Assembly: GCF_964194025.1 (NCBI RefSeq)
Contig: NC_134478.1
Span: 21,204,001-21,268,000, forward strand
Reading direction: 5' to 3'
DNA length: 64,000 nucleotides
DNA from: Convolutriloba macropyga
Lineage: Eukaryota
The position numbers and the translations under genes are program-made. Every line of letters starts with the position of its first letter. Position 1 is the stretch's first letter. Below the pieces are notes generated by a model. The model saw only the letters and a list, made by a program, of their open reading frames with translations. It made no database searches and was not told where the DNA came from. Positions 2,190 through 24,228 of this stretch are shown here, in pieces.

Positions 2190-4825
2190 GACTCCCCAAT
2201 CTGGAAAAAAGCGCTAGTTGAAGTTAGGCGTTGTATGAAAGTCTTCTGGAATTAAAACTATGCCGTTTTTTTGCGGATTTAACTCGATAATTATACAAAA
2301 TGCATCGTTCTTTTTTTTAAAATTGGAAGAATTCCACGCAACAATTGGTCTAATTCGCACACACTTGGAAAACTTGGTCGGTTTGCTAAGCGCGAAACAA
2401 AATCAGGGAGAGATTCGAAAATATCATGGATTCTTAGAATCAGAGACTTTTTTGTTTTTATTTTGATGCTGCCTTTTTTCAAAATATTTTGTTTTTGCTT
2501 TTTAATGTTAATTACTGAAAATATTTTTTATTCACGGCTCCGTTAATGACGGCTCTAATTTACGTAAACTTGAGGCCGAATGTAGATACAGTTTTTTCCG
2601 GAGCATCAAAAGTTGTTTGGCTTTGAGGAAGAGTTTTAGTAAAATTTAACTTAAGTCTTTTCTTTTGCCTTCAATTATTATTCCCTTGGCAGTCTGGTTT
2701 TTAAGTTTAACCACTCAATGATCTAAATTTCTTCCTCAAGAGGTGCAAGTGAACCGTTTTGATTCATTTGTTACTAATGTCTCTTGCGTTATTGAATGTA
2801 TTTGTTTTAAAGAAATTTCTGTGTTTTTTTGAACTGACATTTTTTATATTAATTTAGTCAACATTTTGCTGATTCTCAGTAAGTACAGGTCAACCATTCC
2901 TCCGTATAGAATACAAACCTAATTTGGTGGCCGAATGTCTTACCAAAAGGTTTTCTTGCCTTTCGTATTACGAGTTTTCATACAAAACATTCTGATTTTT
3001 GTGCATAATTGCCCATTTTTGCTGTTGTTTTTATTTCTTTTGTAAATTGTCACATTATTTAACAATCTACCCGAAAAAAACTTACATTTGAAACTGAACA
3101 TATTTTTCGTTTTCATAACATATGGTTTGAAGGGCTGCGACACCGTTCTCTTGCAGACATTGATAGAGTTTTTTATTTTTGCCCTTTATTTCTTTTTAAT
3201 TTTTTTATCTTAACTTTTTTTTTCAATTTTTGTTGTCATATGCCAAATATTGTGTCATTAGAAGTCTCAGTGGCCATCTACGGATGAACAAATGAACTTA
3301 ATAACTGATATCGGTAAATAGCTAATGTTTGTTTTGACTTTCAAATTAAAATTCTAAAAAAAAAAGAGTAATAGCATTCTTCAAATTATCCCTTTTTGTT
3401 CTGGTTTGCATTTTTTTTCGTATTTTGCAATGTTGTATCATTTTCGTAAATTAGTCTCATTATTTAGAGTTCTTTTGAGTGTTTTTGTTGAATCAAACAA
3501 TTTTTCTGTTGTTTAAACATTTTAAATGATGTCTTCAGGGCTTAGACAATTTATTTCAGAAGAATTTTGCGAAGTTTAGAAACTTTTCAGTTTTTGTGGT
3601 TGTTTTTGTTGTCAAAAGAGACGCAAACGAAGATGTTATGTTCTCGCGGTCAATACTCTTTTAAATTTAATGACTTCAAAATTGTGGTTTTGTAAAGTTG
3701 TTTGTGAAACTTATTAGTTCAGCTTGTATTTAATGTTATTTTATGGTCTTATGATTCAGTCTCATTAATTGCAGTTGCAAATAGTTTTCACATTAGTTGC
3801 AAGACAAATTGTCTACACTTTTAGTCGAAAAATTTGTTGCCTATGAATTTTGAAAATATTTGTTTTTAATAAAACAGAGATAGATTTTTGAGAACTGCCA
3901 GTTTTTTTACTGTTAAATTGTGGCTAAGCATCTCTATAAACAATCACATCATTTATCTATTGGATTAAAATTTGCTCTTCATAACGGTTTTATTTTCCTC
4001 AAATGGTTTTTCTTCTTGGAACAACCAGTTTTCTTAAAACCAATTTTCGTGATTTTTGCATATTTGCACCTTTTTGTAGGTTTTTGTTTTCTTTTCGCAG
4101 TATCGCAATAATGGGCGTCATTTGATTTACAAATACTGTCACCTGCAAAAAACTCAAACAATGATTTTTATTGTTTTTAGTGATCAGCTTAATTTTTAAT
4201 TGATTGGGTGGACATCGTTTTCGTGCATAATTTTTCGTGCAAATTTTTAGTTTTGCCTGTATTTGTCGTTCTTTTTTAGTCGTATGGCATATCCTGGATA
4301 ATGAAAGGCCTCAGTTACTCTCTATTGAGGTATAAAAGACTCTCTCAATGATTTCATTTGATGCGTAATGTTTCTAATCATTTCGATTTTTTTTAAAAGC
4401 AATATTTTAATAAACTTTGCCCCTTTGCTCATTTCTAGTCGACTTGTTGCCAAGTCGCATTGAGGAAAAGTCCCATATTTTGTTCCAAAAAAGTGCCGGT
4501 TAATCTTCTGAGTATAAATTTTATCTGATGCCATTTTGATTTGGTGATTAGTGGTTTTCAAAAAATGGGCAAAGAGTTTTGGTCGTAATTAATAATTGTA
4601 ACTATTTGATTTTTATTTTCGTCTTTTCTGGTAGTCATATTATGGTAGCTACAGGTCTCATAGCCCTCTAGAGTAGATTGTTATATTCCTTTAGTAGTTT
4701 GTTGAACGATATGTTGATAAGTTTATTTTTTAAACTCTTCCTCATTTGGTAGACAATTAAGTGAAAAATATAGATGAGTGGGGTCGGAACTTACTGTGCG
4801 AACGCACTTTACCGAGCCTCTTTGT
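2190..4825 (+). mobile_element. 5'-truncated Helentron/DINE-1-like non-autonomous element (HINE)
   Basis: 3' end GGGGTCGGAAC (4780-4790), then hairpin GTGCG-AA-CGCAC, then CCGAGCCTCTTTGT. The interior shows patchy similarity to the 29422-32454 copy (e.g. 4450 vs 32066, 4577 vs 32191, 2390 vs 30067). 5' terminus not found; left boundary approximate. Confidence 0.65.
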
Positions 4826-4827
4826 CG

Positions 4828-4872
4828 ATATATATATATATATATATATATAAATATTTATTTATATATTTA

Positions 4873-4913
<41 letters not shown>
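4828..4913. repeat. Interrupted (TA)n microsatellite
   Basis: Direct reading; abuts the HINE 3' end. Confidence 0.95.
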
Positions 4914-4917
<4 letters not shown>

Positions 4918-6489
4918 GCCAATTTCCTATTTCTAAATACTTTCATGAATAATGAATAATTTTTTTTTCAATAACAGTTGAATACGTTTTATGATTTAAC
5001 CGACTTCCAAAGTGCATGCAAAATTTTGGGTCCAGTTTAAAAAATAGAGGGGATCCAGAGCCGAGTATCAAATAAGAGTTGAGCTACAGTCGAGTAGCAA
5101 AAATTCGATAAAGCTGTAGTTCGACATCAATAATTTGGGTCGAATTAAAGTCATGATGAACACTTAAGTTGAGCTGAAGTCTTTTAGTGGAGTGTTTCAA
5201 TCGATCATCGTCTTTTCATAGGCAAAGAATTTTTGGTATAGCATGTCAAACTTTCATTACTATACATTAGAAAAAATGCTACTGTTAGAAATCCATTGTT
5301 TGAAAAAAAAGTTAGCTTTCTAAATCAGAAATCAATACTTAAGTCGAAGAAGTCAACAGTTCAATTGATGTACAATCTTGCTTCAGCTTAAAAAAAATCG
5401 GTGTAATACCAATAATGCTCTTCGGGTCGTAATAACAATGTCGACACCATTAAGTATCAATTAGTTTTGCTTGTATAAAATACTATTGATTTATTGATTT
5501 TCTTTCCTTTTACAAAATGCGTACATCACGGAAATTTAAGCGTTGTTTGTTGTATAATGGCTTGTAGCTATTAAATTTTTTATGTACAAAAACATTTGTC
5601 CATGAACTGTTCCCTTAGATATATCAATATTAGACTTCTTTAATCAATATCTCCTCGCTGTACGTACGGTGAGGAGGAATCAAATATAAAGATAATTAAG
5701 GTAAGGTCTTACCGTCATATAAATTATCCGCTCTTCAAAAATAAATTGTAGTAAAATGAACAATTGATAGGTATTGATGTTTTCTGTGGATACTGTTACA
5801 ACTCGTTATGTACTTGGACTATTGGGTCATCAATTTTGCCCAAAGTCCAGTTTCACCACAATTTACATTACTGCGTTTGTACGGAAGACCAAACAAACAC
5901 GAAAACAACCATGTAGGAAATCTGCGGTAGCATCAATTTTAAACGTGATGAAGCTTCGGAATGCTCAATTTTGTCGTTATGGTTGGTTTAATTCACCAAA
6001 AATGTTCATTATGTTTGTCTTTTAACTGTGGTAAACGTAATCGTGTTCAATGTGAAGCCTTATAAAAAAATAGTTTACCTGCATGTCAGAAAATAGGGTT
6101 TGTCTCGCAATGTAGTCAAACTTTTGATGTGAAGCGCAACACAGCGGTTGAACTCCCACGTTTGAAAAGCAAAATTTTCGATTTTTATCATTTTTTTGAA
6201 AACTGACAATTACGATATAAACATTAAGGGTTTTGCTGTTTTTGTCTAACTAATGCCAAACATACCAACGATTTTCCACCTTTAACTTCGAGAGTTTCAG
6301 GATTAGGACTGCATTATTTACGGAGTCAAAGTGACAATTACCTAAATGCATCGCATGAATATCGTTTGGTATCTTTGAAAAGCCCTAAAGAGCTCAAAAA
6401 ACTTATCATATAGCCAAAAATGAAAAAAAAAACCCGAAAACTTGTAGTAACAACGCAACGAAAAAGATATATAAGTCTAGTTAACTTAC

Positions 6490-6635
6490 ACTTTGCTGTG
6501 ATTTTGTTCTCTTTGTTGTTCCCTGAGTTGTTCCACTTCCTGTTTCAAGTCTTCTATTATCCGAGTGTTCTTCAATCGGTTTTTCTTCAGTTCGTTCAGA
6601 AGCAACACTCGACTTGTGTCAGAATGCATGGCCAT
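6490..6635 (-). CDS. Probable first coding exon of an uncharacterised small coiled-coil protein (MAMHSDTSRVLLLNELKKNRLKNTRIIEDLKQEVEQLREQQREQNHSK)
   Basis: Minus-strand ATG at 6635 with an in-frame TGA just upstream; heptad-like E/K/Q/L-rich peptide; canonical donor GT|gtaagt (6489-6484), phase 2, compatible with exon 1537-1366. Missed by the ORF track. Confidence 0.6.
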
Positions 6636-7066
6636 TCTTCATCCATAAATCTGATAACTTATGTCAGGAAAAAATTAAGAGGAAATAGTTTTAAAAGAGG
6701 AATAAAACAAGGAGAACACTTTGTTATGTTTAGTTTCAGTATTAAAAAGCATATCTCGCGTTGTCTGTGAAACGTGATCGTCTTTACCAGCAGTTTTCAA
6801 AAATAATATTCAAACAGAACCAAATTGCAGTTCTCTAATGTTTTTTTATTTTAAAGTTGTACAAATGCATCTACCATGTTTATAATTCTCTTGACGTGTG
6901 CGCTTTTACTCAAACGCGTTCAGCGGCTGTGTGTAAGTTGTCGTTTCAACGTACAAGCTGACGTTGAGCCATTCGAGTTACAAATGGCATTTGCAAAAAC
7001 GCTATCAAAAAGTATGAAAAAAGCCGCGGAAGCCGATTGCCATCCCGATTGAGCTTCTCCAGACTT

Positions 7067-7505
7067 CCCGGGTCGAGGTTTGGCGTTGAATTTTTGTAAG
7101 AAATGCGGTGAAATGTGGTGAAAATAAAAAATTTTCACAGCGTATTTCTTACAAACAACTGTTGGCGGTGAATGTGGTGAAATATTTATTGTCACCGCCT
7201 TCTCAGTATTCCTACAAAAAAGATGCTTCCTTACACGGTTTCGAACCTGTTACCTCCCGCAAGCCTTCACCTTCTTAGTCCACTGCCCCAACTGTCACTT
7301 GCTGCTACGGTATTTCTTGTGAACTTAAATCACATTCAGTAAACGTTGGAAAGCCAATGCGGTGAATTTTTGTAAGAATTGCGGTGAATTTCGAGGTGAA
7401 TTTTCGTATGAAATGCGTTGAAATGCGGTGAAATTTTTTTTTTTCACATCTTTCACCGCAATCGCCGCATTTCTTACAAAAATTCACCCAATACCTCGAC
7501 GCGGG
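7067..7505. mobile_element. MITE, CACTA/EnSpm(CMC)-like non-autonomous element
   Basis: Imperfect TIRs of about 40-55 bp (CCCGGGTCGAGGT...GAATTTTTGTAAGAAATGCGG / CCGCATTTCTTACAAAAATTCA...ACCTCGACGCGGG), internal GCGGTGAA subrepeats, TT on both flanks. Confidence 0.8.
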
Positions 7506-7788
7506 TTTGACTTCTGATCAGACTATTTTAGGTCGCACACGCGCGCATAGTTCAACCCAAAATTAATGCTCTGTAACAAACCGGGTCGCTAAAGACTGCA
7601 CGGCAGCGGTAGTCGCAAAAGGACTGATCTGTGGACAAAATCATGAAGATCGTATGGTCACGAGTCGCCTGATTTTATCATCAAAGGGAACAAAATGAAA
7701 AACCAGTCAAAAACGCCGTTCATTGATTAAACCACTTCTGTTAACCAAGATTTTAAAGCAAGGACAATGTTTGAGAGTTGGGCCATTT

Positions 7789-9170
7789 CCCGGGTTGACC
7801 TTTCTTGGCAACCATATCGAAGAACCATATATGGTCCCATACAGGCCATACAAAATTTTCTTATATGATCTTGCTATGGTTGCCAAGATCTCCATATATG
7901 ATTCTTATATGGCATCCAAGAATCCAATGTGGTCATTTGTGCGTTCTTTCAACGCCCATACAAAGCTTATGCAGCAGTTCCAGCTTTTAACGCTTTACAC
8001 GACTTATGGCATATTGGTAACATATATGGTTCTTACATGGCCCATATATGGTTCTTATATGGTCCATATATGGTTCTTATATGGTCCATATATGGTTCTT
8101 ATATGGTCCATATATGGTTCTTATATGGTCCATATATGGTTCTTAAAAGTTTCTTATATGGTTCCGGCATGTTTCTTACATGGTTATTACCTTGTCCACT
8201 CAAGGCCATTACAACAAAACCTTTGTGATTAGATATATGGTGGTTGCATGATCCATATATGGTTCTTACATGTTTCTTTGATGGCTCATATATGGTTCCG
8301 ACATGAGCCAAACATGGTCCATATCAAGTTATTCCAAAAAAACCTTTGTGATTAGTTACATGATTCTTACATGATCCACAAATGGTTCTTACAAGATTCA
8401 TACATAGTTCTTGCATGACCCACAAATTGTTCCATAACGGTTCCTGTATGGCTCTATGGTTTTCTAAATATCCACGTATAGTACGCCATTTTTGCATGGC
8501 TGCTCTGTGTTTGCTACATGCATATGGATGCCAAGAAGAATATAAAGGAACTGAATCTGCTTTTTCTCTAGAAACAATGTTTTTGTGCCAAATTTTAAAG
8601 TCGTTTCGTATCTTTTCTTCTATTATTTTTTTTGAGAACTCCACATAGTGCTGAAGTAATACATATGCCTTTTGCAACCAAAAATGTGTTACTTACTGCC
8701 ATTTTTCAAGTTTTTTAAACACTCTTTAAGAAATCTGACAAGTCATGGATTTCTTGGCAACCATATGCAAGACCATAAATATTTATGGTCTTGGATATGG
8801 TTGCCAAGAAATAAAAAATCGAACTAACTTAATTTGCTTTTTTGGAACGCTTAATGTAGTCAGAAGATGTTAATTAAGCTGTTCTCTGTAATATTTTTGT
8901 ATTTTTTGACTTTGACTTTTATGGTCCTATATGGCACCATAAATGTGAATGGTCTTGGATATGGTTCCCAAGACACCATGAACTTCAATTTTTTTTCAAG
9001 TGTTTTGATGAGTTTCTCTCCACTCAGAGTGCATTGTATGGGTGTTTTAAGAGCTTTATGAGCAATGTTGATTTTTTTGCATGGTCAGCTATATGGTTGC
9101 CAAGTTACCATGAACTCCATATATGGCTTGGATATGGTTGCCAAGAAAGGTTTATGGTGGTCAACCCGGG
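7789..9170. mobile_element. CACTA/EnSpm(CMC)-like non-autonomous element with subterminal repeats
   Basis: Termini CCCGGGTTGACC / GGTCAACCCGGG, subterminal inverted TTTCTTGGCAACCATATC / GATATGGTTGCCAAGAAA, TT on both flanks, internal CCATAT/ATATGG repeats. Confidence 0.85.
8020..8165. repeat. ~21-bp minisatellite (GGTTCTTATATGGTCCATATAT)n inside the MITE
   Basis: About 6 units read directly; explains the repetitive spurious ORFs at 7723-8311. Confidence 0.9.
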
Positions 9171-11410
9171 TTCTGAGCGTTTTCTGACAAGTAAGATATT
9201 TTCAATATATTTTTTCTTTATTGTGTAGATTTGTAGCCTATACATTCCTGGGCGAGAGAGAATGGCTATCTCATAAGATCTTGCATGAATCTTATGACAG
9301 ATGGTTATCTGATAAGTTCTGACAAATTTACTACAAAAGATGGCCATTTATTATTCAGTTACTGCATTGGAAAATTGAGAAAAGGTTGCGCATATTTGAT
9401 CAACTTTTTGAGAATTAATTCATTTGAAAACTGCTTTTCAATATAACAAACTAAAATTTTGCTGCCCCAATACAAAATTGTTACTTTTTAATTTTGGTTC
9501 CAAAAGCATGAAATCATTTTCGTTTATTTTTCTTTTTTTTTCATTATGCTTTTTGAATAACAAGTTCTTCCTGAATTGATTGTCCTTAAATATATATTTC
9601 TTATTGCACATAATCTGGAGCAACATTAAAAAACAACTATATTCTTGCAGGTATTATTGATGACCTTATTGATGACCTTATGATTGGTCATCTAATAATG
9701 ATTTTTTTAGATCACCAATTTTTTGCTAACTTTTGATAAATTTTTCAATTTTTTAAATTTTTGAAAATTTGTGTGATTTTTTAAAATTTTCGAGACTCTG
9801 GGGCAATGCAACCTCCTCTAGAATTTGATAATAGGTTACTGCATAATTTCTTCTAGTAATGGAATGCTTTTACAACATTTTAAATTGTCAATTTTTTGCA
9901 ATTTTTTTAAGAATAAATGCAATTTTGATCAGGATGTTTTGCGAAATGTTTGTCAGTTTTTGAATTTTTCTCACCCTAAGGGCCAGGTAAACTCTTCTAG
10001 TGTTTGATAATAGGTTACTGCCAAATTTTCAGGGAAATGGAATGGTTTTCAACTTTTTAATATTTTAATTTTTTTTTGGACCAGTGAAACTTTTCTTAAG
10101 CTTCAAATAGTGTTCCTGAATAGGGTTACAAAAAAGTGTATAAAAACAATGAAATGGTTTTGAAGATATATTCATCACGAATTTCTGCAACCTTATAATA
10201 AAGACTTTATAATAAAATGTTGTCGTTTTTTTGTTATTTTCTGAGTCTATTGAATTCCAAGGGACAAATTAATTTAAAGTCCAGCTGATGGATAACTGAA
10301 AAAATTTGAAAGGCAGGAAAAATGGTTTCGAACACATTATTATGGCAAAATTTAGAAACTTCGAAAAAAATTTGCCATTTTTAATTCATTTTTAAAGTAT
10401 TTGACATATTTCTCGAGTTTTTCTATCTTTAGTCGCAGATTATTTCCGTTCAAGGCTTGCACGTGGGATAAAGGGTATATTTAAGTGGATCAAATCTGAC
10501 CTGCAAGGTAAAAGCAGTGATCATGTTTTTGGTTAGTTTGTTTGATTGTTTTAGTTTCTCCAATTTTGGGACTTTTTGTTTTTTGGCTGCCATTGTTCAA
10601 CTGATCTGCTCGTCAGACGCAGTAATTTTTTATTCAATTTCTTGGCTTGCATTTCAGGACTTGTCCTGCTATGTTTTATTTTTCTCTTTCTCTCATGGTG
10701 TTTCAAGTTGTTTCAATGAAGTTGTTTTTCGGATATCATTTTGCTAGGCCTCAATATTAAAATAGCACATTTAATGCAAAAACAAACATTTTTAGCACGC
10801 CTTTTTATGTTCACTGTGTTATGCCTTAAGGCTTGGGTTGTGAATTCGTGAACAAATCTGTTCAAAGATTTGGCGAGAGCTAAGCATTACAATAGATCAA
10901 TTCTGGCGACAGACTTAGTTCGCTTCAAAACAATATCCTGCTTAGTCAATCGAAAAAGTTTTTAATATTATTCTCTACAAAACTCAATTTTTACGGTCTA
11001 AACAATGTGTTCAAAACACAGTATAACTCACGTCAAATTTCAATTTGTCGCCAGTTGACAACGGAGGTTATAATTCTGTTACCATTATGTGGCCATAATC
11101 GATTCAAACTGTGCTTACAAATATTCAGAATGTAAATTTTATGCTCGGATAATTGTTTCTAAATTATAATGAGGTCTAAATTAAGATTCTTATCTCAGTT
11201 TCTTCTGAAGAAAGTAACAAAATAATTACGACGTGATCTATGTTACCACATGACATCAGATGTTATAAGTCTATTTATATGTTCACATGAGAACGAAGCC
11301 GAGACAATTAGAATTTTGATGCGCTCATCTGATTACATCAGTTGATCATTGTTGAGATGAGTTTTGGCAGGTCATTCTTTAGTTGATTCCGAAAAGCTAA
11401 ACTAAAAAGT

Positions 11411-12023
11411 ATGCCTTTGGTTTCTGTCAAAATTAAAAAAACCACTCGAGCAAAAACAGCATATGAGGCGAAGGCAGGTAGTCTCTTTCATATTGACAGA
11501 TGGAGCCCCACAAACCGAGAAAGATGTTGGCTATTGATGTCTGGGGCAAGCGACCCCCCTAAGGACGTTGAAATTTCAAATCGGAGGCCTAGGATAAAGC
11601 AAAGCGCATTATCTTCCATACGAGATGGACATTACCTCTACGGTGTCCCAGAAGATCTTAAGAATATGTATAAAGCAATTCCCGAGGAAGAAGATGCAAA
11701 GTCTGTGTTGAAACTGACGATGACAAAAAAGGATGTAAGAGAGCACATTCAAGAATTCTTCCAAAAATGCCAAAGGGAGGACAAAAAGCCAATGTTGTAC
11801 TACACGGGCCATGGTCAAAAGAAAACTGGCAACTGGTGCTGCAGTGATGGAACTATAACGATCGAGGAGATATTCGGAAGGATTCCCAAAGGAATGGAGT
11901 ACCCTACAATCATCAGTGATTCTTGCTACAGTGGAAGATGGGCCAACTTCTGTTTGGCAGAGAATATTGGTGGCTTCGGGTGTCTTTCTGCTTCTCGTGA
12001 GGATGAACAGGCCTATGATGCGG
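11411..12023 (+). CDS. Exon 1 of a metacaspase-like cysteine protease (clan CD, peptidase C14-like)
   Basis: Caspase-hemoglobinase fold motifs in order: CWLLMSG (beta1), LYGVPEDLKNM (cf. LxGCxNDA), TKKDVREHI, MLYYTGHG (His134 at 11810), TIISDSCYSG (Cys172 at 11924), CLSASREDEQAYD. Donor G|gtaata at 12024, phase 1; the ORF tail beyond it is AT-rich read-through. Confidence 0.85.
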
Positions 12024-14059
12024 GTAATATTTTCATTAAAGATGTCCGAGAACCGTATGCATCGTCATGCGGAGTCCCAACTCAAACATTTTTTAAAAAA
12101 ACAAGAAACAATTTATTCGCCCTGTTATGAGTCAGTCGCTGTTATTATTAAATCAGATTTTAAGCTTCGCTAAACAATATATCTTGGATTTCTGTGCAAC
12201 AGACAAAAATATCCACTGATTTCGCGAAGTCTGTTGACTATTGTGCATTTAAAATCAAGGTTCAGAGTCCGAGCAAAGCTCCAATAAAGTTATTTACAAA
12301 AAATTATATATTCTTTTCATACTAACAGCAGGTTCACTGCATGACCATAATAACTTTGCCTCAAGCGTTACAAGATCATTACAAAAATAGGATTTTCGAA
12401 TTACAGGACTGGGTTTTAATCCTAACGCTTTGATAGTACGAAAAACTGCACAATTACAGTTGAGTCACTTCTTTCAAGATATACAGAGGCTAGTTATATG
12501 GCATGATGTATTGAATTCGTTGTCTCGTCATCGCAGCAATAACTATAGGCCACTAACACCAGCGGAGCTCAATTCAGCGCAAGAAAAAAATCCGGAGCGT
12601 ATATAACTTTTAGTTTATGGAGCCAAAAACGGACTTCTTGATATTTACGATCAACTCCAGCGTAGTACTCTAGTTACCATCCATTTAGTGAAAGACATTG
12701 TAACTAACTGTAAACAGAAAGACCCTGGTTAAATAACAGAAAGCAGGGCATTACTTCTGACCGTCGTCGGCAAACGCTTCGTACCAGTCGTGCGTTCGAA
12801 GACGCGCAACTAACAGAAAGCTTTGATAACTGATTATCTCCAAGTTTTGCCTGACTGATGGAGTCCAACCGTTAACTGGCATTGTGAATAAGTCAACTCA
12901 GACGTTACGGGTTAGTTTGTGGTTAGTTCTCCTCAGTAACGTTTTACTAAATGTTTTTCTGTCCCCATTTATTGAGTAACAAAAGCTCGTCCGCTTTTTC
13001 GGAAGGTCTTCTGGTTTCAATTTTTTCATTTTCATTTTTTTGCTTCAATTTTGTTTTGTCTCCCTTCTTTTCACGTTTATCCGATGTTTGACAGTAATTG
13101 AGTTTCGCTGTAGTTCAATTTAGGTTTCTAGTAGTATGCTTATTTTCGTTCCGGACTCTGGTTTGTTTTTCGATTTCAACCCGAATGTTTTGATGGTTTC
13201 TTGTTTTTGCTTGTTTAATTTTGCTTGCATGCTCTTTAGTTTTCTGAGTATGCTTGTTGGCAAGGGTTTCACTTAAGCTTACCTTGGAGGGAGGGCTAGT
13301 GAACGTTTCTACTTTTTTCGGCTCTTTGGTATACTACTGCTCTGCCGTAATTTTATTGTTGGCATAATAAGCCCCATAAAGATCTGTGCTAGTTTATTTT
13401 GCAGTAGCTTCTTTCATCTTTTATAGGGTGCCACGTAAGTTTGTTCTGAAGTTGCCGCCAATTTCTTTGCTTGAGTTTGTGGCTGTAGCCTGCAAGCAAA
13501 TTTCTTTTCACCTCTTTGTTCGTTGCTTTCCTGTTTCTCGCCTGTTCGTTCCCCTCTTCTTGTATTGCAACGCACTGCACGCTTGAAGTTTCCGTTTCGT
13601 TCGCTAGTATTTCCGTTTCCTCGTTGGTTGATCGCTCAAATTTTTTGTCCCGCCCGTCTCGTTTTCTTGCAGCCATGTTTGCCGTTTGGCTGACATTTTC
13701 ACTCCGTCTGTCCCGCTGCTCGTCTCGTCGTGAGTTGTTTGTCTGGCGTTTCTGTCTTTTCCTTGGTTATTCCCGTTGTATTTTACGTACCTCGCTGTAT
13801 TATTTTGTCCCACGGGCGTTTCCCGTTCCGTTGCACATCGCGCGTCTTTGCGCTTTCAGCTTTCCTCTTTCCTTTGTCGGCTACTTCATTACTCGACAAA
13901 CACTGAGCTCCTTGGCGCTTTGCTTGGCAAACCGTGCTCCTAGGGTTTCGTTTAATTCATTTCTGTTTGTGCTCTCATTTCATAGAAGTAAAATAATCTT
14001 TTGGTTCCTGTTTTTCAAATTCATGTCTAACCCACAAAAACGATTTAACACGTTGCATG

Positions 14060-17000
14060 TGCAGGAACAAAATTAGAGGCTGAACAAGGTAATTTGAATA
14101 AAGAATTTGACAATGCCATATCCTGACAGGATAGGCGTGTCAAGGTGAAACGCATCGTTAAAAAGTGTTACGATGATTTGATGAAACTCATAGAGAAAGA
14201 AATGAGGAGCTCTTTGAACTCGCAGAGAAACCAATAGACCTACACGTCTGAAACTTCATTACTGGCTTAGTAATGTGACTAGCAATAATGAAAATTTTCT
14301 TATTACTTTTAGAGAAAACATTATTACTGATGAGCACAGATAAAACAGGAGTACAGCAGAACTCGTCGTCACTCATTGTCAAATCAGCGCCTTAAATATT
14401 CTTAAATACCCAGTCAGCGCAAAAACGATTTTATTTTGGCAAGAATAAGAAAAATCAGAAACAACGAAGCAAAATGAATCTGAACTCTTCATTGTAAAAA
14501 TTCGTCAAGCACTCGAATTGCAAATTAATTAAATAGAAATCTTAGGAAACTCATCATAGGAGCGTGGTTGAAGTAACTTCCACTGAACTCAAACTGACGG
14601 AGAGGTCCTCAGTTGGCAGTGGTCATACTAAGGAAGTGTATGGTCTATTTACCGAAAAATTTCAATTATTATAAATAACAAATTTTAATATTGGGTTAAT
14701 AACTCTTCGGTAAGTTCTGCTTAGTACGAACAATTGACAGATAACGTCAAAAACCTTGGTGAAATTCAAATTAATTTGCAGTATATCTTGCCCCGTAGCT
14801 GCGTTATCAACTGCCAAAAAACAAACTATTTACCAAGCTTTTCTGCAAGCACTGCTGCAACAAAATTAGAGGCTGAACAAGGTAATTTGAATAAAGATTT
14901 TGACAATGCCATATCTTGACAGGGTAGATTAGAGGCTATTAAATACACGACGCGGTAATAGTGATGGCAACCAGAATGACAAAAAATGAGCTTTACTTTC
15001 CATTTTCACGAGCCACGCCTCAATTGCAATCACCATAACAAACTAAAGCATGAAACGACATTTTCACATCATTAAAAGTCCGTCTACCAAGCTGCACTAA
15101 ATTTGGTAGGCATGCACCTAGCAAGTCAAAATACAGAGCACAGGTTTTGTATTATGGATATTTTAAACAATACCAACTCACAGCCTTTTCTGCTTTTATG
15201 TTTTCCAGTTAGATTTCTTTAAACGCCAAAGACAAAAAGGGCCTCCACAGATAGACTCCATCAAACCTATGCAGCCGCACGCATCTAATCATTGATCCCA
15301 CAGATGATGCATAGCAACTTAGCCGCAGCACCTGATGCATAAAACCTGCCAGCCACACTACCTCCCGCATTAAATCCACGGATAGCAACGCAACCCCTAC
15401 TATAAGTTATCCCAAACTATAGCGAATCGCACAATCCTCAATTACAGTAGCCGTGCAAACTATTCCCACATTATTCCCAAAATAATCGCACCATTGAATG
15501 AGCAGAAACCTCTCCAACGTCTTGTCCAACGTCTCCAACCCATGACGCTATCCTTTTGACGGATCCAAACAATTGGCGCTTTCCAGCCATAGTTCCATCT
15601 GATGCATTCCCGCTTCTCAATTTAAATAGTGTACCACCAGTCCAGTTATATGAACCTCATGTCCACTCACGTACAAGCATCAGCAACTTCTCAAACTCAG
15701 GTATCATCGGAAGCCATGAAGACAATACCCTTTATTAATTCTTTTCCGAACCTCTTGTTTTGGTATAGCCCACCTCACTACCACGTAGCTTGTTTTTAGG
15801 ACTCCGTAGATTTGATAAAGCAACTGCCAGGACGCAATAACCACTTAGACCCATTTCCTGACTAATGATGCCAAGTTATCTTAATTAAAAACTTTTGTAA
15901 CTGTACAAGCAAGGACCCTCACCGCTGAGTACGCATACTGTCGTATTTTATAAAGTAAGCCCTAAAACACTTGAACTTAAATTTACCCAGCTGTAGGCAG
16001 TTGTCAGGGCAATTTTTGTCGAATTCATCAAATTTTTGTCAAATTTAGTTTTCCACCAATTAATACGCACAACAGTATAACAATAGATAACCCATAAAGT
16101 GTTCTGCGACCTTCTAAAGTGTTGTTGGGGTACTTAGGTCACTTTCTTACAACGCTGCTACAGAAAGCGCCTAACTGCTTAACATGGCAGATAAAAAACT
16201 GTCATACAATATGAAATCGTCTTGTCTTGTTCACTCTTCGCTGTTCAAAAGCAATTTCCAAAATCGATACTCATCAATTTCACTGAATCGTTGGAGCAAG
16301 AGGTTGAGGGCACATAATTTGATGGAAAAAAAAACATTAGAAAATAACAAAAACTGAGGATCACACCGAATCAGCAGTCAAGACGGAACTCGCTACAAAG
16401 ACATTTGCTGCTAACTTGCAAACTAAGCACCTCGAGGGACCTGAACCAACATCGGCAACCTCTCTGCCCCTAGCTGCATTGTGTGTAATGGTAATGACCC
16501 CATTTGGCAGTGTCGGGTGCTTGAAGAAAAGACTCCCACTAAGCGGGCTAATGTATTGTCAAGATATAGCTCAGTTTTTTATGTTTAAGTGATAAAAAAA
16601 GTTCAAGCACTACTCCAAACCAAGAAAATGCCAGACGGATGATAGCCTGTTCATCTAAACATTAACAATTAGCATTAACAGCGCAAACAATTTATATACG
16701 TCGAAGTAAACTATCAACTGGGCATTTATCAAGTAGGACCACTACTAAGCAACCTGTTAGTAATGAGAAAAGACTCCTCCAGGTGACGAAACTAAATTGA
16801 TCAAATCTTGTGTTACAGCTACCACGTCTTAATTTTAGTGCCATACCGCCTGCGGTAACTCTTGGAGGCCAGTAATCATGCAGATAGATTTGGATTGCGA
16901 GAAAAAACACTAAGGTTAACAGTGAGGTGTATAAACGCCAAGAAAAGTGTAGCCACCTAAACTTTTCAACTGATTGTAACACCTAACGGATATCAATACT

Positions 17001-20000
17001 GCTAAGCATTCAAACTGAGTGAATGTGTAAAAAATTTTAATTTGTTTACAGAGAAAGAAAAAATGACGTTAAAGCACATCAATAATAGTACCATCACTTA
17101 GCGGTTCTAGATCCTATATCACAAAGCTCTGGCAACATTAAGTTGATTCCTATACCGGATGTGCATCACGTCATCCGCTCGTTAGGTTCTTTTGCAGCCG
17201 GCAAGAATTGCTTACCATTTGTTGTCGCTTGCCCATGGGTTCGGTTTTGACCGGTCCGTTGATCGATTTGTTGCAAAGCTAATATGCAGGAGGATTTCGA
17301 ATTGGCTAGTCTGGCAAAGTGTTGGTATGACACAGTACACTTAGGCAAATTGACCCCCAAACCGCCTCGGATGCAGTTGTACATCAGATTTTTGAGAAAA
17401 CCACATGCATGATGGAAAGTGATATGATGTAGGAAAGCTGTGGCCTGAAGATATCATCCAACTGCCCAAGAGTTACTCCTAATCGCTGGTCCAATTAAAA
17501 GAGGACTTAGATAGTGTTTATGCTGTAATGATTCTCATTGTCCACAAGGTGTAGAGGCGCTGAGAGTGTGAATGGTACCTATCGCACCACCCGGTTATAA
17601 ATTTGAGTAAACAAGGGAACAATCGTAGGGTGCTCACTGAAGATGCTTATTTTCATGGTCTATTCTAAAACAAAGTTATACTTACTGCCCCAGATGTACT
17701 ACAGAACCTCCTTTATGTACTCGTAAGGTTTAGACAACAGGATGTAAGGAGAACAAGAAGGATCTAACAAGAAACATTGCGATGCATCAAAACGTGGGCC
17801 ATATATTCGGGGCTAAGTCGCCCACTTGGGCGCACTACCTACTACATCACACTGCACGTCATAATATTAACAATGACAAGGAAGCAGTAAAAGCCGTCCA
17901 TGGGTACTTCTTCATGGAGGATTACTCAGAGTAATTAGACTCCCCCGAGAAAGCGCTCAACCAGTGGAGAGAATTGATGCAATTCCTTTCTCTAGGTGGG
18001 CTTAGGCAAAAAAAGTTTGTAAACAATGTGACAGATCTGGTTCGCCGAACTGACGGCGTCTCCCAATCCACTGAATTGAAAATCATCATTTCCAGTACAG
18101 AAGAGTGCTCACAGGTGCTCGGTCTTGTGTGGGATCAAAAAACAACACTGTGGTTGTAACCTGGGCCACCAGTGGGACCATCGCAAGTAGTTTAACGCAA
18201 CGCCTGGTATTAGGCCTTTTTTCCATCCTAATGTTCTTGTAGCACAATTCACCCAGAGTACACGTTTCACGTTTAATGATCCAGACTTTTGGTGTGTCAG
18301 TTGAAACAATTGGGATCAAGAGTTATCAAAGGCTCAATTGTTAGGTTTCTGACCTGGTGCGTTGATCCTGCACAGCTGACCGCAAACAAGATGACAGGAA
18401 GCCGCTTGTCATGACCGTCCCATAACCTGGAACTTAGCATATTTGCTGATAGCTCCAAGACGTGTTTAGCTTCGTAACATTTTTAGGGCCCCAATTTATT
18501 TCTCCTTCCGGTGACATTGGAACAAAGCTGGCATTCGTCTGGGTAAATTGCGCGTTGCACCTATGAAGACAATGACTGTTTCATAAAGACAAGCTGCTCT
18601 TGTCGCTGCACAATTATTAGGGAAAACAATCAAACATTGACAGTTTCTGTTGATGGAGCATTCATGAGGTCAGACAGTACATCTGTTTTGCATTGTATAC
18701 ATCGGATACGTAGAACTCAAACAACAAGCACCCAATCGTCATTGCAAACCGATTGACTGAAATCTTGAAAACAAATTTTGATCAATGGAATCACACTTGA
18801 AATATCCGCTGAGGTTTGACAATCAAGTAGCTGGGTGAAGGAGCCTGACTTCTTAAAAACTAATTACTCGCCTTTCTAGACAAACAATGACGTCTTAAAA
18901 AAGATTCAAGCACGGAGAAGTACAAGGAGCCAGATGATAGGAGTATAAAAACATGTCATCGCTTCCTGCATCAGCAACCAAGCGCGTTGAGAAACCAAGT
19001 AAAATTCTCATCTCGATTGATATTTTAGCTCATGTCAAAAACTCCTCCGTATAACATCCTTTAAGCTCCCTCTCTTACAATCACACAATTGTTATCGAAA
19101 CATTGACGACAGCATGGCCAATTTTAATGAACTTGACGACGCCCAGCAGAATCTCCAGTATTTTTTCAAGAAGGGTAGCAGAATCTCTTAGTTCCGTAAG
19201 AAAGGGCATTTTTGATAACAAATACGTAAAGAAGAGGAGCCGAATTGATCAGTTTGTAGAGTTTTTTATCCTTATTAATTTATCCGTTCTTGTGCTTGAC
19301 TTTGAGAGCAAGAAGAAACTAATTAAACACTAGCATCATATCCTGCCCGATCCGCCTCATACTTTTGTTAAACTGCTTCTGATCACGTGAAACATCACCA
19401 TTAACGAATTAAATATTTGCTTGGTAAGTAAAGGAACCTTATGTTGTCGTCAAATTACGTTCTTCACTGTCTTCTTTTGAATCGGACTCTGTTTTAAGCA
19501 GAAAGTTCCGCGCAACAACCATTCCATTCATTATGGCTGAACCTTTTAAGGAGAGAATTTCCTACAGTTCTCCTTCCCTTTATCAAAACCGAGATCAATT
19601 AATTTGGCCCACTTAACGTCTCCGTTTGTCGAACTATCGAGAAGAGGTTGAAGTCACCGTTTGTATTGACACTAGTTCCTGTCTAATGGGAGTGGAGTGG
19701 CTTATTTACCGATATATTCCGGCTGCAATCTGATCATATACAGTGGGGCCATAATCAGTGCCGAAAAAAGCTTCGTCATTGCATTGGAAATTGGAAACCA
19801 ATGGACATTGCTACAAAGCTAGCGCAAAAAGGCATTGAGTGGCGGTTTAATCCGTCCAGTGCATTAGACCACGGCAGCATCTGGGAGTGGTTGTTCCGTT
19901 GTTTTATCCCGTTGTTTTTTATGTAGAAATGAGTTTATACCAAACACGGCACGCATCACCTCGACAATGAGATTTTGATCAACATTTTTTGTCTTGTTAA

Positions 20001-20345
20001 ACACGCACTAAATTCATGTCCGTTAACGCCCTAAGTGACCGACCTGGGCACAATTACACCTAATCGTTTTCAATTCGATAACGGTTATCCAGCACTCCTT
20101 TTATCGTTGACGTTGACGCGTTTGATCAACGTAAGCGGTACACTCTCGGGCAGACAAATGTTTGTGCAAATTGGTTGCAATGCCTCAAAGAGTGTGTACC
20201 TAATCGATATCGTAGATCTAAGTGGCACACAATTCTCGAGCAACACCTAAGGATCGTTGATTTAGCTGGGAAAGTTTAAGAAAGTAGCCCTAATCGATAC
20301 CATTCTACTCTTTGTGTTGAAAAACTCCCATACGGCTCCGAGAAT
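14060..20345 (+). mobile_element. Degenerate BEL/Pao LTR retrotransposon (gag-pol remnant) inside the protease intron
   Basis: Frameshifted, stop-ridden motifs in canonical BEL order: gag AKLS*LKTFVT (~15870), zinc knuckle CIVC..IWQC (~16475), YDVGKLW..LP (~17425), RT WYLSHHPVIN (17573), LTAPDVLQNL..RFRQ (~17680), HIFGAKS (17800), FMEDY (~17910), VLGLVWD (~18115), RNase H IFADSS (~18440) and RVAPMK (~18552), integrase WRFNPSSA..HGSIWE (~19840) and LNSCPLTP (~20008). LTRs not identified; boundaries approximate. Confidence 0.9.
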
Positions 20346-20673
20346 TGTTTCTAATGAACGTACAACGATCGGAAAAAATATGTTTAACATAATTTTGAGT
20401 AATTCTTATCTTAAAATAGGATACAACTTGGTTCTATGACTTTCGGATTTTGGATTCATTGGTACAATATGGTGACCGGTTTTGAATTGATTATTGACCA
20501 GACAAAACACCGGCCAGAAGAGCATCAAGAACTGCCATCTAAAAAAACACTTGTTGGTCCTTAAAACCTTGTTTATTGTTCTTTTTGCTGACAATTATAT
20601 AATGTTGAATACGAATTGCTGAGGAAAAGAAAATGGTCACGGTTGAGTATTTTCACCTACATTTTGGTAGTCT

Positions 20674-21257
20674 CTTATATAAAATATGTGCAAATGTTTT
20701 CATCGTATCTCTCTTTACCTTGTCCTACTTTGCACTTTGTCAGTGTTCCATTTCTTGTGAAACAAGCCCAGTAACTAACTTTGTTAAATTTTTGAATTGT
20801 ATTTTCTTTTTGGCGGATTTCTTTTTTCCATGCTTCGTTCCACTTAGAAAAAAAGTGCGTACGAAAAAAAAACAAAAAACTATTGACGTCCAAGACGTTT
20901 TCTTGTGAATATAGGAACCTCACAATCAAGACACTCATAAACTGTTTCACAGAAGAACACTACAATTGCAGTGTTCCTCTGGGAATCTGTTTGTGAGTGA
21001 CTTAATTGTGCGATTGCTTTGTTCATAAGCAAGCAGTCTCGGACGTCAATAGTTTTTTTTTCGTACGCACATTTTGTCCAAGTGGAATAAAGCATGGAAA
21101 ATAGAAATCCGCAGAAAAAAAAAGAAATTCAAATCAAAAATTTTACAAATTTAGTTACTGAGCTTGTTTCACAAGAAACGGAACACTGGCATGGTGAAAA
21201 GTAGGACAAGGTAGACAGAGATACAAGGAAAACCACTGCGGTTTTGTATATAATAAG
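20674..21257. mobile_element. Foldback palindromic MITE-like element (~290-bp arms, no spacer)
   Basis: Arms are imperfect reverse complements centred on CAATTG at 20963-20968 (e.g. TTCTTGTGAAACAAGC / GCTTGTTTCACAAGAA; GTGCGTACGAAAA / TTTTCGTACGCAC). Confidence 0.85.
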
Positions 21258-21497
21258 CTTTCTTCGTCAAAGGGTCTTGAACTTGGATCCGTTTGGGAAG
21301 ATAATGCCAGAGCTCTGCCTCTTGTCCCAATGCTTGGATAATTTTTTCTCATTTCTATGGGATGGTCCCGAGTTCGTTTGAAAATGCTTGTATCGCCAGA
21401 TTATGAGTTTACGTTTACAGTGAAAAAGACGCTGTCGGGAACTGCAACTTAATTTCATTTGCTATCATCTTTATCGTCTCACCTTTGCTCCAGGCTC

Positions 21498-21840
21498 AAT
21501 ATAATAATAATTGTGGTTTCCGCGTAATCGCAGCGGAACAGCATTAGGCCTACAGTAGCCTGTTTTCAGCTGCCCTTTTTCTTATTATTCCCCACATTTC
21601 AGACTGATCTTTTTATGAGCAGCGTTGCTCTTTTTTTGGTGACTTTAGCCACTTTTTTTGCGTCTGAAACGTTCACGTGGTACCATCATTGCAGCCAACA
21701 TTGGTCAGTCTGTTGTCAACCCGAAGCTATGGCTAAGTAAGAGCTCATCCTCACACAGACAACTTCACGGAGGCAGGGGATTGAACTAACGATCATTGGA
21801 GTGTCAACCACAGACCTTACCTCTCGGCTATCACGCCACT
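21498..21840 (-). mobile_element. tRNA-derived SINE
   Basis: Minus-strand head has an A-box TAGCCGAGAGG (21830-21820) and B-box GTTCAATCCC (21786-21777); (ATT)n tail at 21512-21498; a related 3' fragment lies at ~44950-45010. Confidence 0.7.
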
Positions 21841-22218
21841 GCTCTCGGATATCATAACACATCTTGTGTAGTTTTTAAGCAAAATTTATAAGCAATGTAG
21901 GAGTGGGTCCAGGGTGGGCCCGGGCATTCAGGGTGGGCCCGGGTAAAGCTGCCTTGGCTTAATTTTTAGCTGCTCACAAAGTATTCGTATAGTTTGTGTA
22001 GTAATTAATAGTGTCAATACAAGTTACTGTTTTCAGTTTTGTGAGAGCACTTATGTTGCAGCATATAGGGGGGGGGGGGGGGGTTCAAAGTAGTAAGTTC
22101 TAAGCTTGAAGCAATTTAGCTCAACTATCTCACGTGAATTGTAAACTCCGCAAGGGGTAAATGGACCCCCACAATAGACAGGGACAGACCAATGAGAATC
22201 TGGTGATTTATATTCTAG

Positions 22219-22445
22219 AGGACGGTTCTGGTGGAGAATTGACTCTTTTCATATTGGGCTTGGCTGACGACGTACGAGGAAGCACGCCTCTATATGGCAC
22301 TGACTACTCTTATGATCCCCCAAGGCTTCAAAGACAGGGTAGCAACTGCAGCATTACAGAGGAATTTGGTCGCAAGAGTAGGGAAGAGACACATAAAGAA
22401 CGAAGAACGACTAAGTTTAACGTTTCTCGCAATAAAAAAATATAG
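22219..22445 (+). CDS. Exon 2 (terminal) of the metacaspase-like protease
   Basis: Acceptor tattctag| at 22217-22218; the phase-1 join G+AG=Glu gives ...EQAYDA-EDGSGGELTLFILG, completing the conserved 'sA...E.A.d....GG.fT..l' p10 motif. Total CDS 840 nt = 279 aa; AATAAA at 22584. Confidence 0.75.
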
Positions 22446-24228
22446 TGTAAATTGACTGCATGTGATCAAATTCTAATAATGTACAAAAGTGTCAAGGGAA
22501 CTGTATCTGCTTTATCTAGCTCTGATTTATATACTAACAGTCTTATTGTCCGCATATTAATTGTAAATAGCAAGCAAATTTGAAATAAATTAAAAGTTAA
22601 CAAAACATAAATGGAAGTCATTGAGGATTTTTTACAAGTATCAAGTTTTTAAATGCAATTTAGTCATGCTTGGGTCATGCTTGTGTTGTGTGTGTGTTCG
22701 TGGGACTACATCAGACAACATATTTTCAATAATTAACCACAAATTCTAAAATGTTTTAAAAACGGGAACGGGAATCAAAACGAAATTGAAGCGTGTCGAA
22801 GGTGTTGTTATAATGGTGTTGAAACAACTAATAGAAAACTGGGTTGATCATTCTTGATTACCATTACTAGGACCAAATTTGGTAAACCAGCCAATCTCAA
22901 CAAAATTTCGTGCAGCATAGTTTCTATGAAGTCACGCACAATCTTGGGTACGATTTCAGAACTCCACATTTAAGATGAATAGGTATTATATCTGAGATAA
23001 AGGAAAAAAGTTCTTGCGCTGTTGGTTCGTTTGTTCTACAGAAGAGGTACCATGGCATTAGTTTTGAGGACTGACTGAACAAATAACTAATACAAAGCGG
23101 TCGCTGATCGGCGTTACTTAAAACTCTGGGAACTTGGATATGTTATGAAAGAAGAGAACTATAGTTTCAACTTCCAACGGTCCAAACTCATTGAAATCAT
23201 ATCATCGATTTAATTAACAAAACAATTGACACACAGAAACACAGTGACGCAGAGAATCAGTTATCACTCAGTGCCAGGAACCTGATGTCCCACAAAACAA
23301 TCAAAAGCCAAGGGAGCATATTGAAACCCAAACGGAGTTAAGGAGGTTCTGCTCGAACATTCTGCAGCTGGAAAAACTTGGTAAATCCACAAAAATGCTG
23401 GTTTAGAAAGGACATTTTATTGTTGCGTCCAGAGCTACCAGCTGAGTAGGCTGAAGTCTTATTTTGAAGTAATTTCGAGCAGCATAATCTTCTGCCAGCT
23501 TTCCGATTGCCGGCGGTTGCGCATTCTGAGAGGATCTTGTTCCTTGCACGATTCCGGCAGGCTAGCATATCCATCCGACCATGGCCAGCTGTGGGGGGGG
23601 GTCACAAAGGATGTCTAATATACCAAACTTGGAAAAAACTCACATCAATTGTTCCTCATGAGTCATTTTTTGCTCTGATAAATATAGAGGTACAGTTCTC
23701 AAATCAGACGAGCCACCAGGCTTATGACTAAGGTTTTGCCATTTTGTTCTTCAACTAAACTTCAGATTATGAAAAATAAAACCTCCAGCTTTTACAGCTT
23801 TTATTTAAATTATAAATTTTCCAGCTTTTACTTACTAATGAGATCAATTGATTCCAAGTTGCAACATGCACTGCATTATATAGAGCATTTCCGTCCGAAT
23901 TGAAACCTTGCGCGAAATTTTGTGACTTTCAAAATCAAAACAGTAGGGTTTTTATAATTAAAATTATGTTGCTTGAATTGGCTTCTCAATAATCAATTGT
24001 TTGTTTTTAAGATGAGGTTGAAGATGCTTTTTTGCTCTCTTTTGTTCGCTGTACGAGCTGTAAGAACTTAGCGGGGGCGCTCTCGCTGACGGAAACCCAT
24101 TTGTTTGATGTCTAATGATTTTTCTTGATAAATCTTTAAAAATTTTACTTAATCCTAAGACATTGCACTATATTTTTCTAAAGGTGCTTTTTATTTTGTA
24201 CAACTTCGTATGCCTTTTCTTGTCGTGG

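Follow-up and report, generated by a model that had tools for sequence, protein, structure and literature searches.

The DNA analysed here is a 64,000-nucleotide stretch of the acoel Convolutriloba macropyga (C11:21204001-21268000 of the 1,175,981,408-base assembly), a species whose chromosomal genome has been published (PMC13650328). We refer to this whole stretch as the window and number positions from its first letter. It contains a two-exon protease gene on the plus strand, with exon 1 lying in an open reading frame (ORF) at 11411-12130. The spliced product has 279 amino acids (aa) and is identical to RefSeq XP_075257691.1, 'uncharacterized protein LOC142349800'. An earlier description made from the letters of the window (the sequence-only reading) had proposed a 279-aa two-exon ORF with His134 in YYTGHG and Cys172 in DSCYSG; the sequence and the identical RefSeq protein both bear this out, the two motifs occupying residues 130-135 and 170-175. 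The features of the gene are given below, where the percentages refer to the rows of an alignment of 128 relatives, X1 is a public sequencing run, and GSU0716 is an orthocaspase-like bacterial protein of solved structure (PDB 3bij).

11411..12023, plus strand: exon 1, coding part; residues 1-204 and the first base of codon 205 (ORF and sequence; 100% match to XP_075257691.1; transcript-like X1 contig)
11654..11656, plus strand: Asp82 codon GAT, first predicted acidic S1-pocket residue (95% of rows)
11810..11812, plus strand: codon CAT of the predicted catalytic His134 in YYTGHG (sequence; His in 96% of rows)
11918..11920, plus strand: Asp170 codon GAT in D-x-C, second predicted S1 residue (96% of rows; same register as the D-x-C of GSU0716)
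11924..11926, plus strand: codon TGC of the predicted catalytic Cys172 in DSCYSG (sequence; Cys in 95% of rows; aligned with the Cys of FSDSCHSG in GSU0716)
12017..12019, plus strand: Asp203 codon GAT in A-x-D, third predicted S1 residue (94% of rows; invariant in the animal clade; two codons 5' of the intron)
12024..22218, plus strand: phase-1 GT-AG intron of 10,195 nt (GTAATA donor, AG acceptor at 22217-22218; junction in an RNA-like contig; high-copy repeats inside)
22219..22445, plus strand: exon 2, coding part; residues 205-279 and the TAG stop (22443-22445)
22584..22589, plus strand: AATAAA, candidate polyadenylation signal (from the sequence only)

Exon 1 is 613 nt long and therefore ends in phase 1, with the GTAATA donor directly after 12023. 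The bulk of the protease domain is encoded here, with D82, H134, D170, C172 and D203 among its residues. Homology of exon 2 to the family extends from 22219 to about 22319 and covers the GGELTLF helix and TPLYG. A run of 16 G residues lies within the intron at 22072-22087, about 130 nt before the acceptor.

Four public runs of the same organism (X1-X4) contain the stretch searched. X2-X4 behave as DNA, with a contig unbroken over 10655-12688, and X1 behaves as RNA, with flanking and intronic depth near zero. A 1498-nt X1 contig covers 11032-12023 and then runs into AGGACGGTTCTGGTGGAGAATTGACTCTTT, identical to the letters that start at 22219. Since this contig reads from 12023 straight into 22219, the 12023/22219 junction, which had been put forward as a prediction to be checked in RNA reads, is directly observed. 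The word depth in X1 was 991 for the spliced form vs 13.8 for the intron-retaining contig, and coverage of exon 2 in this run was established as far as 22301. X6, which comes from another study and comprises 159 million letters, contains 73% of the words of 22219-22640; it is probably a transcriptome, because a run so small could hold the locus only in that case. The data suggest that the mRNA continues past the stop codon toward the AATAAA at 22584-22589.

A domain profile search of the window protein identified Pfam Peptidase_C14 (PF00656) at E 1.1e-5, with 25.7 bits vs a gathering cut-off of 21.4. This was the sole domain; neither CARD nor DED nor Ig was detected by the profiles, as the sequence-only reading had anticipated, and Peptidase_C13 gave no match to the window protein at E <= 1. 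Among 58 relatives, 37 matched C14 (E <= 0.01; best 2.3e-10), and there were weak matches to C13 in seven, with C25 and Raptor_N matched by four each. With the C14 profile above its cut-off and the gene assigned to C. macropyga, the claim of an intact, intron-containing clan-CD protease in an animal chromosome stands. An AlphaFold (AF2) model built from 14 family sequences, with a predicted local distance difference test (pLDDT) of 78, had its strands and helices in the order of the caspase-hemoglobinase fold. H134 comes after the strand at 126-133 and C172 after the strand at 166-169, giving a dyad on consecutive strands, and DSSP assigned to the model a six-stranded core and one hairpin within about 200 residues, a model-based result of moderate weight. 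The best structural match in AlphaFold/Swiss-Prot was a Dictyostelium paracaspase. Residue identity in structural alignments was 17-20% with metacaspases, 19% with GSU0716, 17% with MALT1 and 8-12% with caspases. When the family profile was compared with solved structures, it matched only GSU0716, at E 0.029, and MALT1, at E 0.24; nothing below E 10 came from caspases, legumain or metacaspases. A homodimer prediction for residues 1-245, run without controls, scored 0.00 and speaks neither for nor against a dimer.

Across the 128 relatives, 28 alignment columns are at least 85% conserved, among them those of the His-Cys pair and of D82, D170 and D203. The window copy keeps 27 of the 28, the sole change being F144C. 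The sequence evidence supports H134 and C172 as the catalytic dyad of what is predicted to be an active enzyme. The HMMER alignment pairs D82 with the initial Asp of DVYELTN in MALT1, which corresponds to Asp365 when counted back from His415 and which we take to be an S1-pocket residue in the MALT1 structures. D203 is located in the A-x-D segment ahead of the GG-x-[LF]-T helix. With D82, D170 and D203 at S1 positions (a matter of alignment register, not of geometry), the most likely predicted cleavage is after Arg or Lys; the sequence-only reading had drawn this specificity from acidic residues of the window protein, and those residues prove to be conserved family-wide, in 94-96% of the rows. 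In the alignment with GSU0716, nine residues of the acidic loop after GHG, DEPDGVDET, have no counterpart in the family, whose own GHG is followed by x-x-x-T-G-N-W without an acidic cluster. From the missing acidic loop, the enzyme is predicted to be probably Ca2+ independent. The motifs are of metacaspase/paracaspase type and not of caspase type, QACxG being absent, just as had been noted. The window protein is best called metacaspase-like or paracaspase-like and not a proven metacaspase, because the alignment shows no Ca2+ loop and the model no extra strands. The metacaspase identity first assigned to it is thus upheld for the type of motif and not established for metacaspases proper, given the missing loop, the six-stranded core and the solved metacaspases that went unmatched.

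The window gene is one of many. A genome search identified at least 20 further loci in C. macropyga at 33-55% identity, clustered on C1, C4, C11, C12 and unplaced contigs; almost every paralog match ended at residue 203. The window locus itself is solitary and apart from these clusters. Among 1.84 billion representative proteins, a profile search gave 931 matches at E <= 1e-3, 71 of them at E <= 1e-30. Among the named sources are six scleractinian corals (Oculina patagonica, Orbicella faveolata, Montipora capricornis, Montipora foliosa, Desmophyllum pertusum and Stylophora pistillata), the hydrozoan Clytia hemisphaerica, and the acoels C. macropyga and Symsagittifera roscoffensis. The coral, Clytia and Symsagittifera homologs are at 45-58% identity. 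The tBLASTn-type check for paralogs that had been proposed therefore came out positive both within this genome and in a second acoel. An exact YYTGHG is present in 150 of the 202 proteins collected, and D-x-C-[YFH]-[SA]-G follows about 40 residues downstream in almost all of them. The family signature, which consists of YYTGHG, about 35 residues and D-x-C-[YF]-S-G-x-W together with a phase-1 intron two or three codons past A-x-D, is found in full in the window gene. Searches of the ESM Atlas added only a cnidarian 'caspase domain-containing' cluster. More distant, stand-alone relatives of 220-260 aa include sequences from a transcriptome of the foraminiferan Bolivina argentea. As for the literature, PMC8195603 holds nothing specific to the YYTGHG family, and caspases are unmentioned in the acoel immunity study.

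Several distant members differ in architecture. P0197 carries a ricin-B lectin domain N-terminal to the protease domain (E 4.7e-8), and P0103 and P0115 are 905 and 1058 aa long without another recognised domain. P0053 and P0115 each consist of one uninterrupted ORF on a large eukaryote-like contig; some lineages therefore have intronless copies. Ordinary Peptidase_C14 exons of caspase type were also observed in the C. macropyga genome at C12:39487791-39572811 and C12:30821755 (partly a C12 tandem cluster) and at C16:35784735, so that the acoel has canonical caspases besides the YYTGHG family.

Full-length members of the family are about 445-500 aa long, typically about 450-480, and their C-terminal 220-270 residues form a separate domain. 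The model of this domain (pLDDT 92.8) consists of five repeats of one helix and three strands. It matches DUF7477 proteins at template modelling (TM) scores of 0.58-0.73, namely the C-terminal region of the plant casein-kinase-1-like HD16 and bacterial proteins, and a chain of PDB 7tpu (the Fusarium chitinase-modifying protein Fvan-cmp) at TM 0.65. The domain is probably a target-binding or regulatory module; our literature search found no paper on DUF7477. In the other acoel paralogs the DUF7477 exons adjoin the protease exons, and exon 2 has about 110 codons. No DUF7477 exon was detected in the window by tblastn, nor near C11:21.2 Mb in a search of the chromosome region, and homology of the window exon 2 ends at about 22319, after which a unique basic tail of about 40 residues follows. 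The end of homology and the missing domain exons show the window gene to be a truncated, protease-only paralog, a truncation that the sequence-only reading had overlooked. The opposite arrangement is predicted at another paralog, LOC142338694 (L006, P0049; C4:79591424-79607344): its RefSeq isoform X2 (396 aa) skips about 67 codons in exon 1, which removes YYTGHG and D-x-C, so that this isoform would be without the dyad and keep DUF7477. At a coral-clade locus (L024:11083-11808), an in-frame stop (FHD*CFSG) in the DUF7477 region may reflect a short intron, an error of assembly or a pseudogene.

To place the window copy within the family, we used a maximum-likelihood tree of 129 domain sequences, midpoint-rooted and built from family sequences. 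The window copy falls in an acoel clade of 26 rows, separate from a coral clade of 30 rows; both have a support of 96 in the Shimodaira-Hasegawa-like approximate likelihood ratio test (SH-aLRT). Deeper branches lead to a second, more divergent acoel clade, a Clytia clade and further clades, and the stand-alone protist-like proteins lie on the opposite side of the midpoint root. All acoel paralogs are spliced from a phase-1 G|GT donor located 2-3 codons past the conserved Asp. In Oculina patagonica (gene for P0042), a phase-1 intron splits the Gly codon of D-T-R-[G]-E-G-G-D-L-T, and a second coral-clade locus is interrupted by this intron too, in D-T-K-[G]-E-G-G. This coral site is that of the acoel paralogs L004, L011, L014 and L016 and differs by no more than one codon from that of the window gene. 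Since site and phase are common to corals and acoels, separate recent transfers are hard to reconcile with the data. Two pattern scans of 185,579 prokaryotic species, one with animal-clade patterns and one with patterns of the most divergent relatives, both narrow enough to reveal only fairly close relatives, identified no prokaryotic ones. The conserved phase-1 intron and the separate coral and acoel clades indicate that inheritance of the family predates the cnidarian-bilaterian split and is not the result of recent horizontal transfer. The two origins that the sequence-only reading had offered thus fared differently: an overlooked animal clan-CD protease family agrees with the data, and horizontal acquisition, if recent, does not, given the paralogs, the spread over corals, Clytia and acoels, the common intron and the prokaryote scans.

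We consider it probable that LOC142349800 is a transcribed two-exon acoel clan-CD protease gene and a truncated paralog of an old, vertically inherited cnidarian-acoel family. Its product would be a 279-aa cytosolic cysteine protease domain with the caspase-hemoglobinase fold of clan CD, in which the H134/C172 dyad and an S1 pocket of D82, D170 and D203 would cut after Arg or Lys without a need for Ca2+. With DUF7477 lost and a short basic tail in its place, such a protease-only copy could act as an unregulated enzyme or as a modulator of its full-length relatives. Several points weigh against this. The window copy sits on a long terminal branch (0.65 vs a median of 0.34), and the loss of the C-terminal domain could signal relaxed constraint. 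The runs that show expression carry no RNA label, and X1 and X6 were judged RNA-like by contig behavior and run size. The prokaryote scans used narrow peptide patterns and rule out only fairly close relatives, and an ancient transfer from a protist into early animals may also account for the family. No protostome or deuterostome source was present among the species-named matches, although most family members come from metatranscriptomes and from assemblies without a species name, so that absence from these groups does not follow.

It is doubtful, though it deserves to be taken seriously, that the window gene is simply a member of the known p20-only 'type 2 paracaspases', in which case the novelty would be confined to its occurrence in an acoel. 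PMC5978004 and bioRxiv 10.1101/046789 describe several paralogs of type 2 paracaspases in cnidarians, and the Dictyostelium match, the second place of MALT1 in the profile comparison and the pairing of its Asp365 with D82 all point the same way. The similarity to MALT1 is nevertheless marginal (E 0.24), and the DUF7477 fusion of the full-length members goes unmentioned for type 2 paracaspases in the descriptions available.

We regard as improbable an expressed but functionless remnant that has drifted since DUF7477 was lost. An unrelated tail where the C-terminal domain should be, an end branch above the median and a solitary locus are what such a remnant might look like; the reading frame, however, is open through both exons, the spliced form has a high word depth in X1, and conservation at the 28 family positions, including the dyad and the three pocket Asp residues, is as good as that of intact paralogs.

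A recent horizontal acquisition into the acoel lineage, whether the donor was a bacterium, a protist or an alga (the Tetraselmis symbiont, for example), with the intron gained later, appears very improbable. It would explain the similarity of the motifs to those of metacaspases and orthocaspases, the rank of bacterial GSU0716 as the best sequence match among solved structures together with a weak NCBIfam match to a bacterial EACC1-type caspase, the stand-alone relatives in a foraminiferan transcriptome and the patchy distribution among named animals. It would not explain the spread of 20 or more paralogs over several clusters and four chromosomes, homologs at 45-58% identity in six corals, Clytia and Symsagittifera, a phase-1 intron site common to Oculina, the coral-clade locus and all acoel paralogs, separate acoel and coral clades, or two prokaryote scans without a relative. 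The family also occurs in Clytia and in Desmophyllum, animals without algal symbionts (the latter is an azooxanthellate coral), and it is therefore not tied to algal symbiosis, which speaks against the symbiont as a source. That the protein is a true metacaspase of type I, II or III, a class thought missing from animals, is the least credible proposal and hardly to be expected, despite the [YF]-Y-[ST]-G-H-G and D-x-C-x-S-G motifs, the A-x-D...GG-x-[FL]-T segment after strand 5 and a structure-based identity that is highest with AtMC4 (20%) and AtMC9 (18%).

Next to the protease gene lies a second transcription unit, on the opposite strand. The X1 contig with the protease splice also joins 6657 to 11032 across a 4,374-nt gap that has GT-AG ends on the minus strand only; it therefore belongs to a minus-strand gene with a 5' exon whose donor is at 11032. 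Two head-to-head transcripts overlap in the 11032 region, the upstream transcribed part of the protease gene. The two features concerned are:

11032..11410, plus strand: transcribed region 5' of the ATG of the protease gene (the same contig also carries the minus-strand splice 11032 -> 6657)
6491-6657, minus strand: exon of the minus-strand gene, with an ATG that opens a coiled-coil-like sequence (MHSDTSRVLLLNELKKNRLK...); ends at a GTAAGT donor

The word depth in the DNA runs rises from about 63 to 3,300-181,000 at 10600-10753, 12294-12447 and 12602-12755; short, very high-copy repeats therefore flank exon 1 and sit in the intron, the two intronic ones (12294-12447 and 12602-12755) having depths of 3336-7833 vs about 63 elsewhere. 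The X2-X4 contigs over 10655-12688 differ from the assembly at 14 sites and by a 1-nt deletion at 12095. Thirteen of the 14 sites fall at 12083-12654, in the initial 665 nt of the intron; the remaining one, 12014 T>C, is an exon 1 change (Tyr202His). There is none in the 756 nt upstream, and because this upstream part is also without differences, a haplotype boundary fits the pattern as well as selection does.

These findings describe a bilaterian that keeps, expresses and has multiplied a distinct clan-CD protease family of predicted Arg/Lys type, common to corals and hydrozoans and with an architecture of its own, the fusion of a protease domain to DUF7477. The family offers an entry to three questions: how the caspase superfamily diversified in early animals, what DUF7477 does, and what acoels may use as a substitute for canonical immune and death machinery, since acoels are reported to be without the usual immune signalling pathways (PMC12849515). 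The conserved intron is an argument against the habit of calling non-caspase C14 genes in animals horizontal transfers. As a speculation that we hold only tentatively and think more likely wrong than right, an ancient animal system of Arg/Lys-specific protease and DUF7477 recognition may have been kept in cnidarians and acoels, lost in other bilaterians and expanded in tandem, serving cell death, innate defence or the control of intracellular partners, with the window copy as a free-running effector or as a decoy that tunes the full-length enzymes.

Among known protease families, legumain/GPI8 (C13, PF01650) differs from the window protein, which has neither signal peptide nor prodomain; far more members of the family match C14 than C13, and with better E-values. 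From animal caspases (C14A) it is set apart by DSCYSG in place of QACxG, by an identity of 8-12%, by Asp at three S1 positions where caspases have Arg/Gln/Arg, and by the absence of CARD, DED and interdomain linker. Among bacterial homologs, GSU0716 shares YSGHG, the W-C-[FL]-x-D-G hairpin and FSDSCHSG and is the best match of solved structure; its E-value is, however, only 0.029, the NCBIfam 'caspase, EACC1-associated type' (NF047832) reached 22 bits vs a cut-off of 140, and the window gene is eukaryotic, with a conserved spliceosomal intron.

The metacaspases (MEROPS C14B; AtMC4/AtMC9, Yca1) have in common with the window protein the fold, the His-Cys dyad in Y-[ST]-G-H-G/D-x-C-x-S-G, the acidic S1 triad and the highest residue identity in structural alignments (17-20%). 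Unlike them, it has a much shorter domain (about 200 aa), a shortened loop after GHG without the acidic Ca2+ site, and six core strands in the model vs eight, with neither the extended sheet nor the long 280-loop. It also has no type I prodomain or type II p20-p10 linker, only about 17 residues separating C172 from the strand at 190-193. Furthermore, the family occurs in animals, is usually fused to DUF7477 and did not match solved metacaspases by sequence. Reviews describe metacaspases as absent from animals, and textbook accounts credit animals with caspases and a single paracaspase, placing metacaspase-like enzymes in plants, fungi, protists and bacteria (PMC5756287). The claim that animals lack metacaspase-type enzymes, which the sequence-only reading had relied on, is softer than it was made to be, as PMC5978004, citing Hulpiau et al. 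2016, and bioRxiv 10.1101/046789 report p20-only type 2 paracaspases in the early-branching cnidarians, sponges, placozoans and ctenophores.

Unlike MALT1, a paracaspase, the window protein is without death and Ig domains, and its similarity to MALT1 is at the E 0.24 level; unlike the single type 1 paracaspase reported in bilaterians (PMC5978004), the family is multi-copy in the acoel. A domain on its own, which characterises the type 2 enzymes of Dictyostelium and early-branching animals, is seen in the truncated window copy, but full-length members carry DUF7477, a fusion unmentioned for paracaspases in the descriptions available, so that this trait decides neither way. Because the similarity to MALT1 is marginal and the family is fused to DUF7477, we argue that the YYTGHG proteins, set against type 2 paracaspases by description only, form at least a distinct subfamily.

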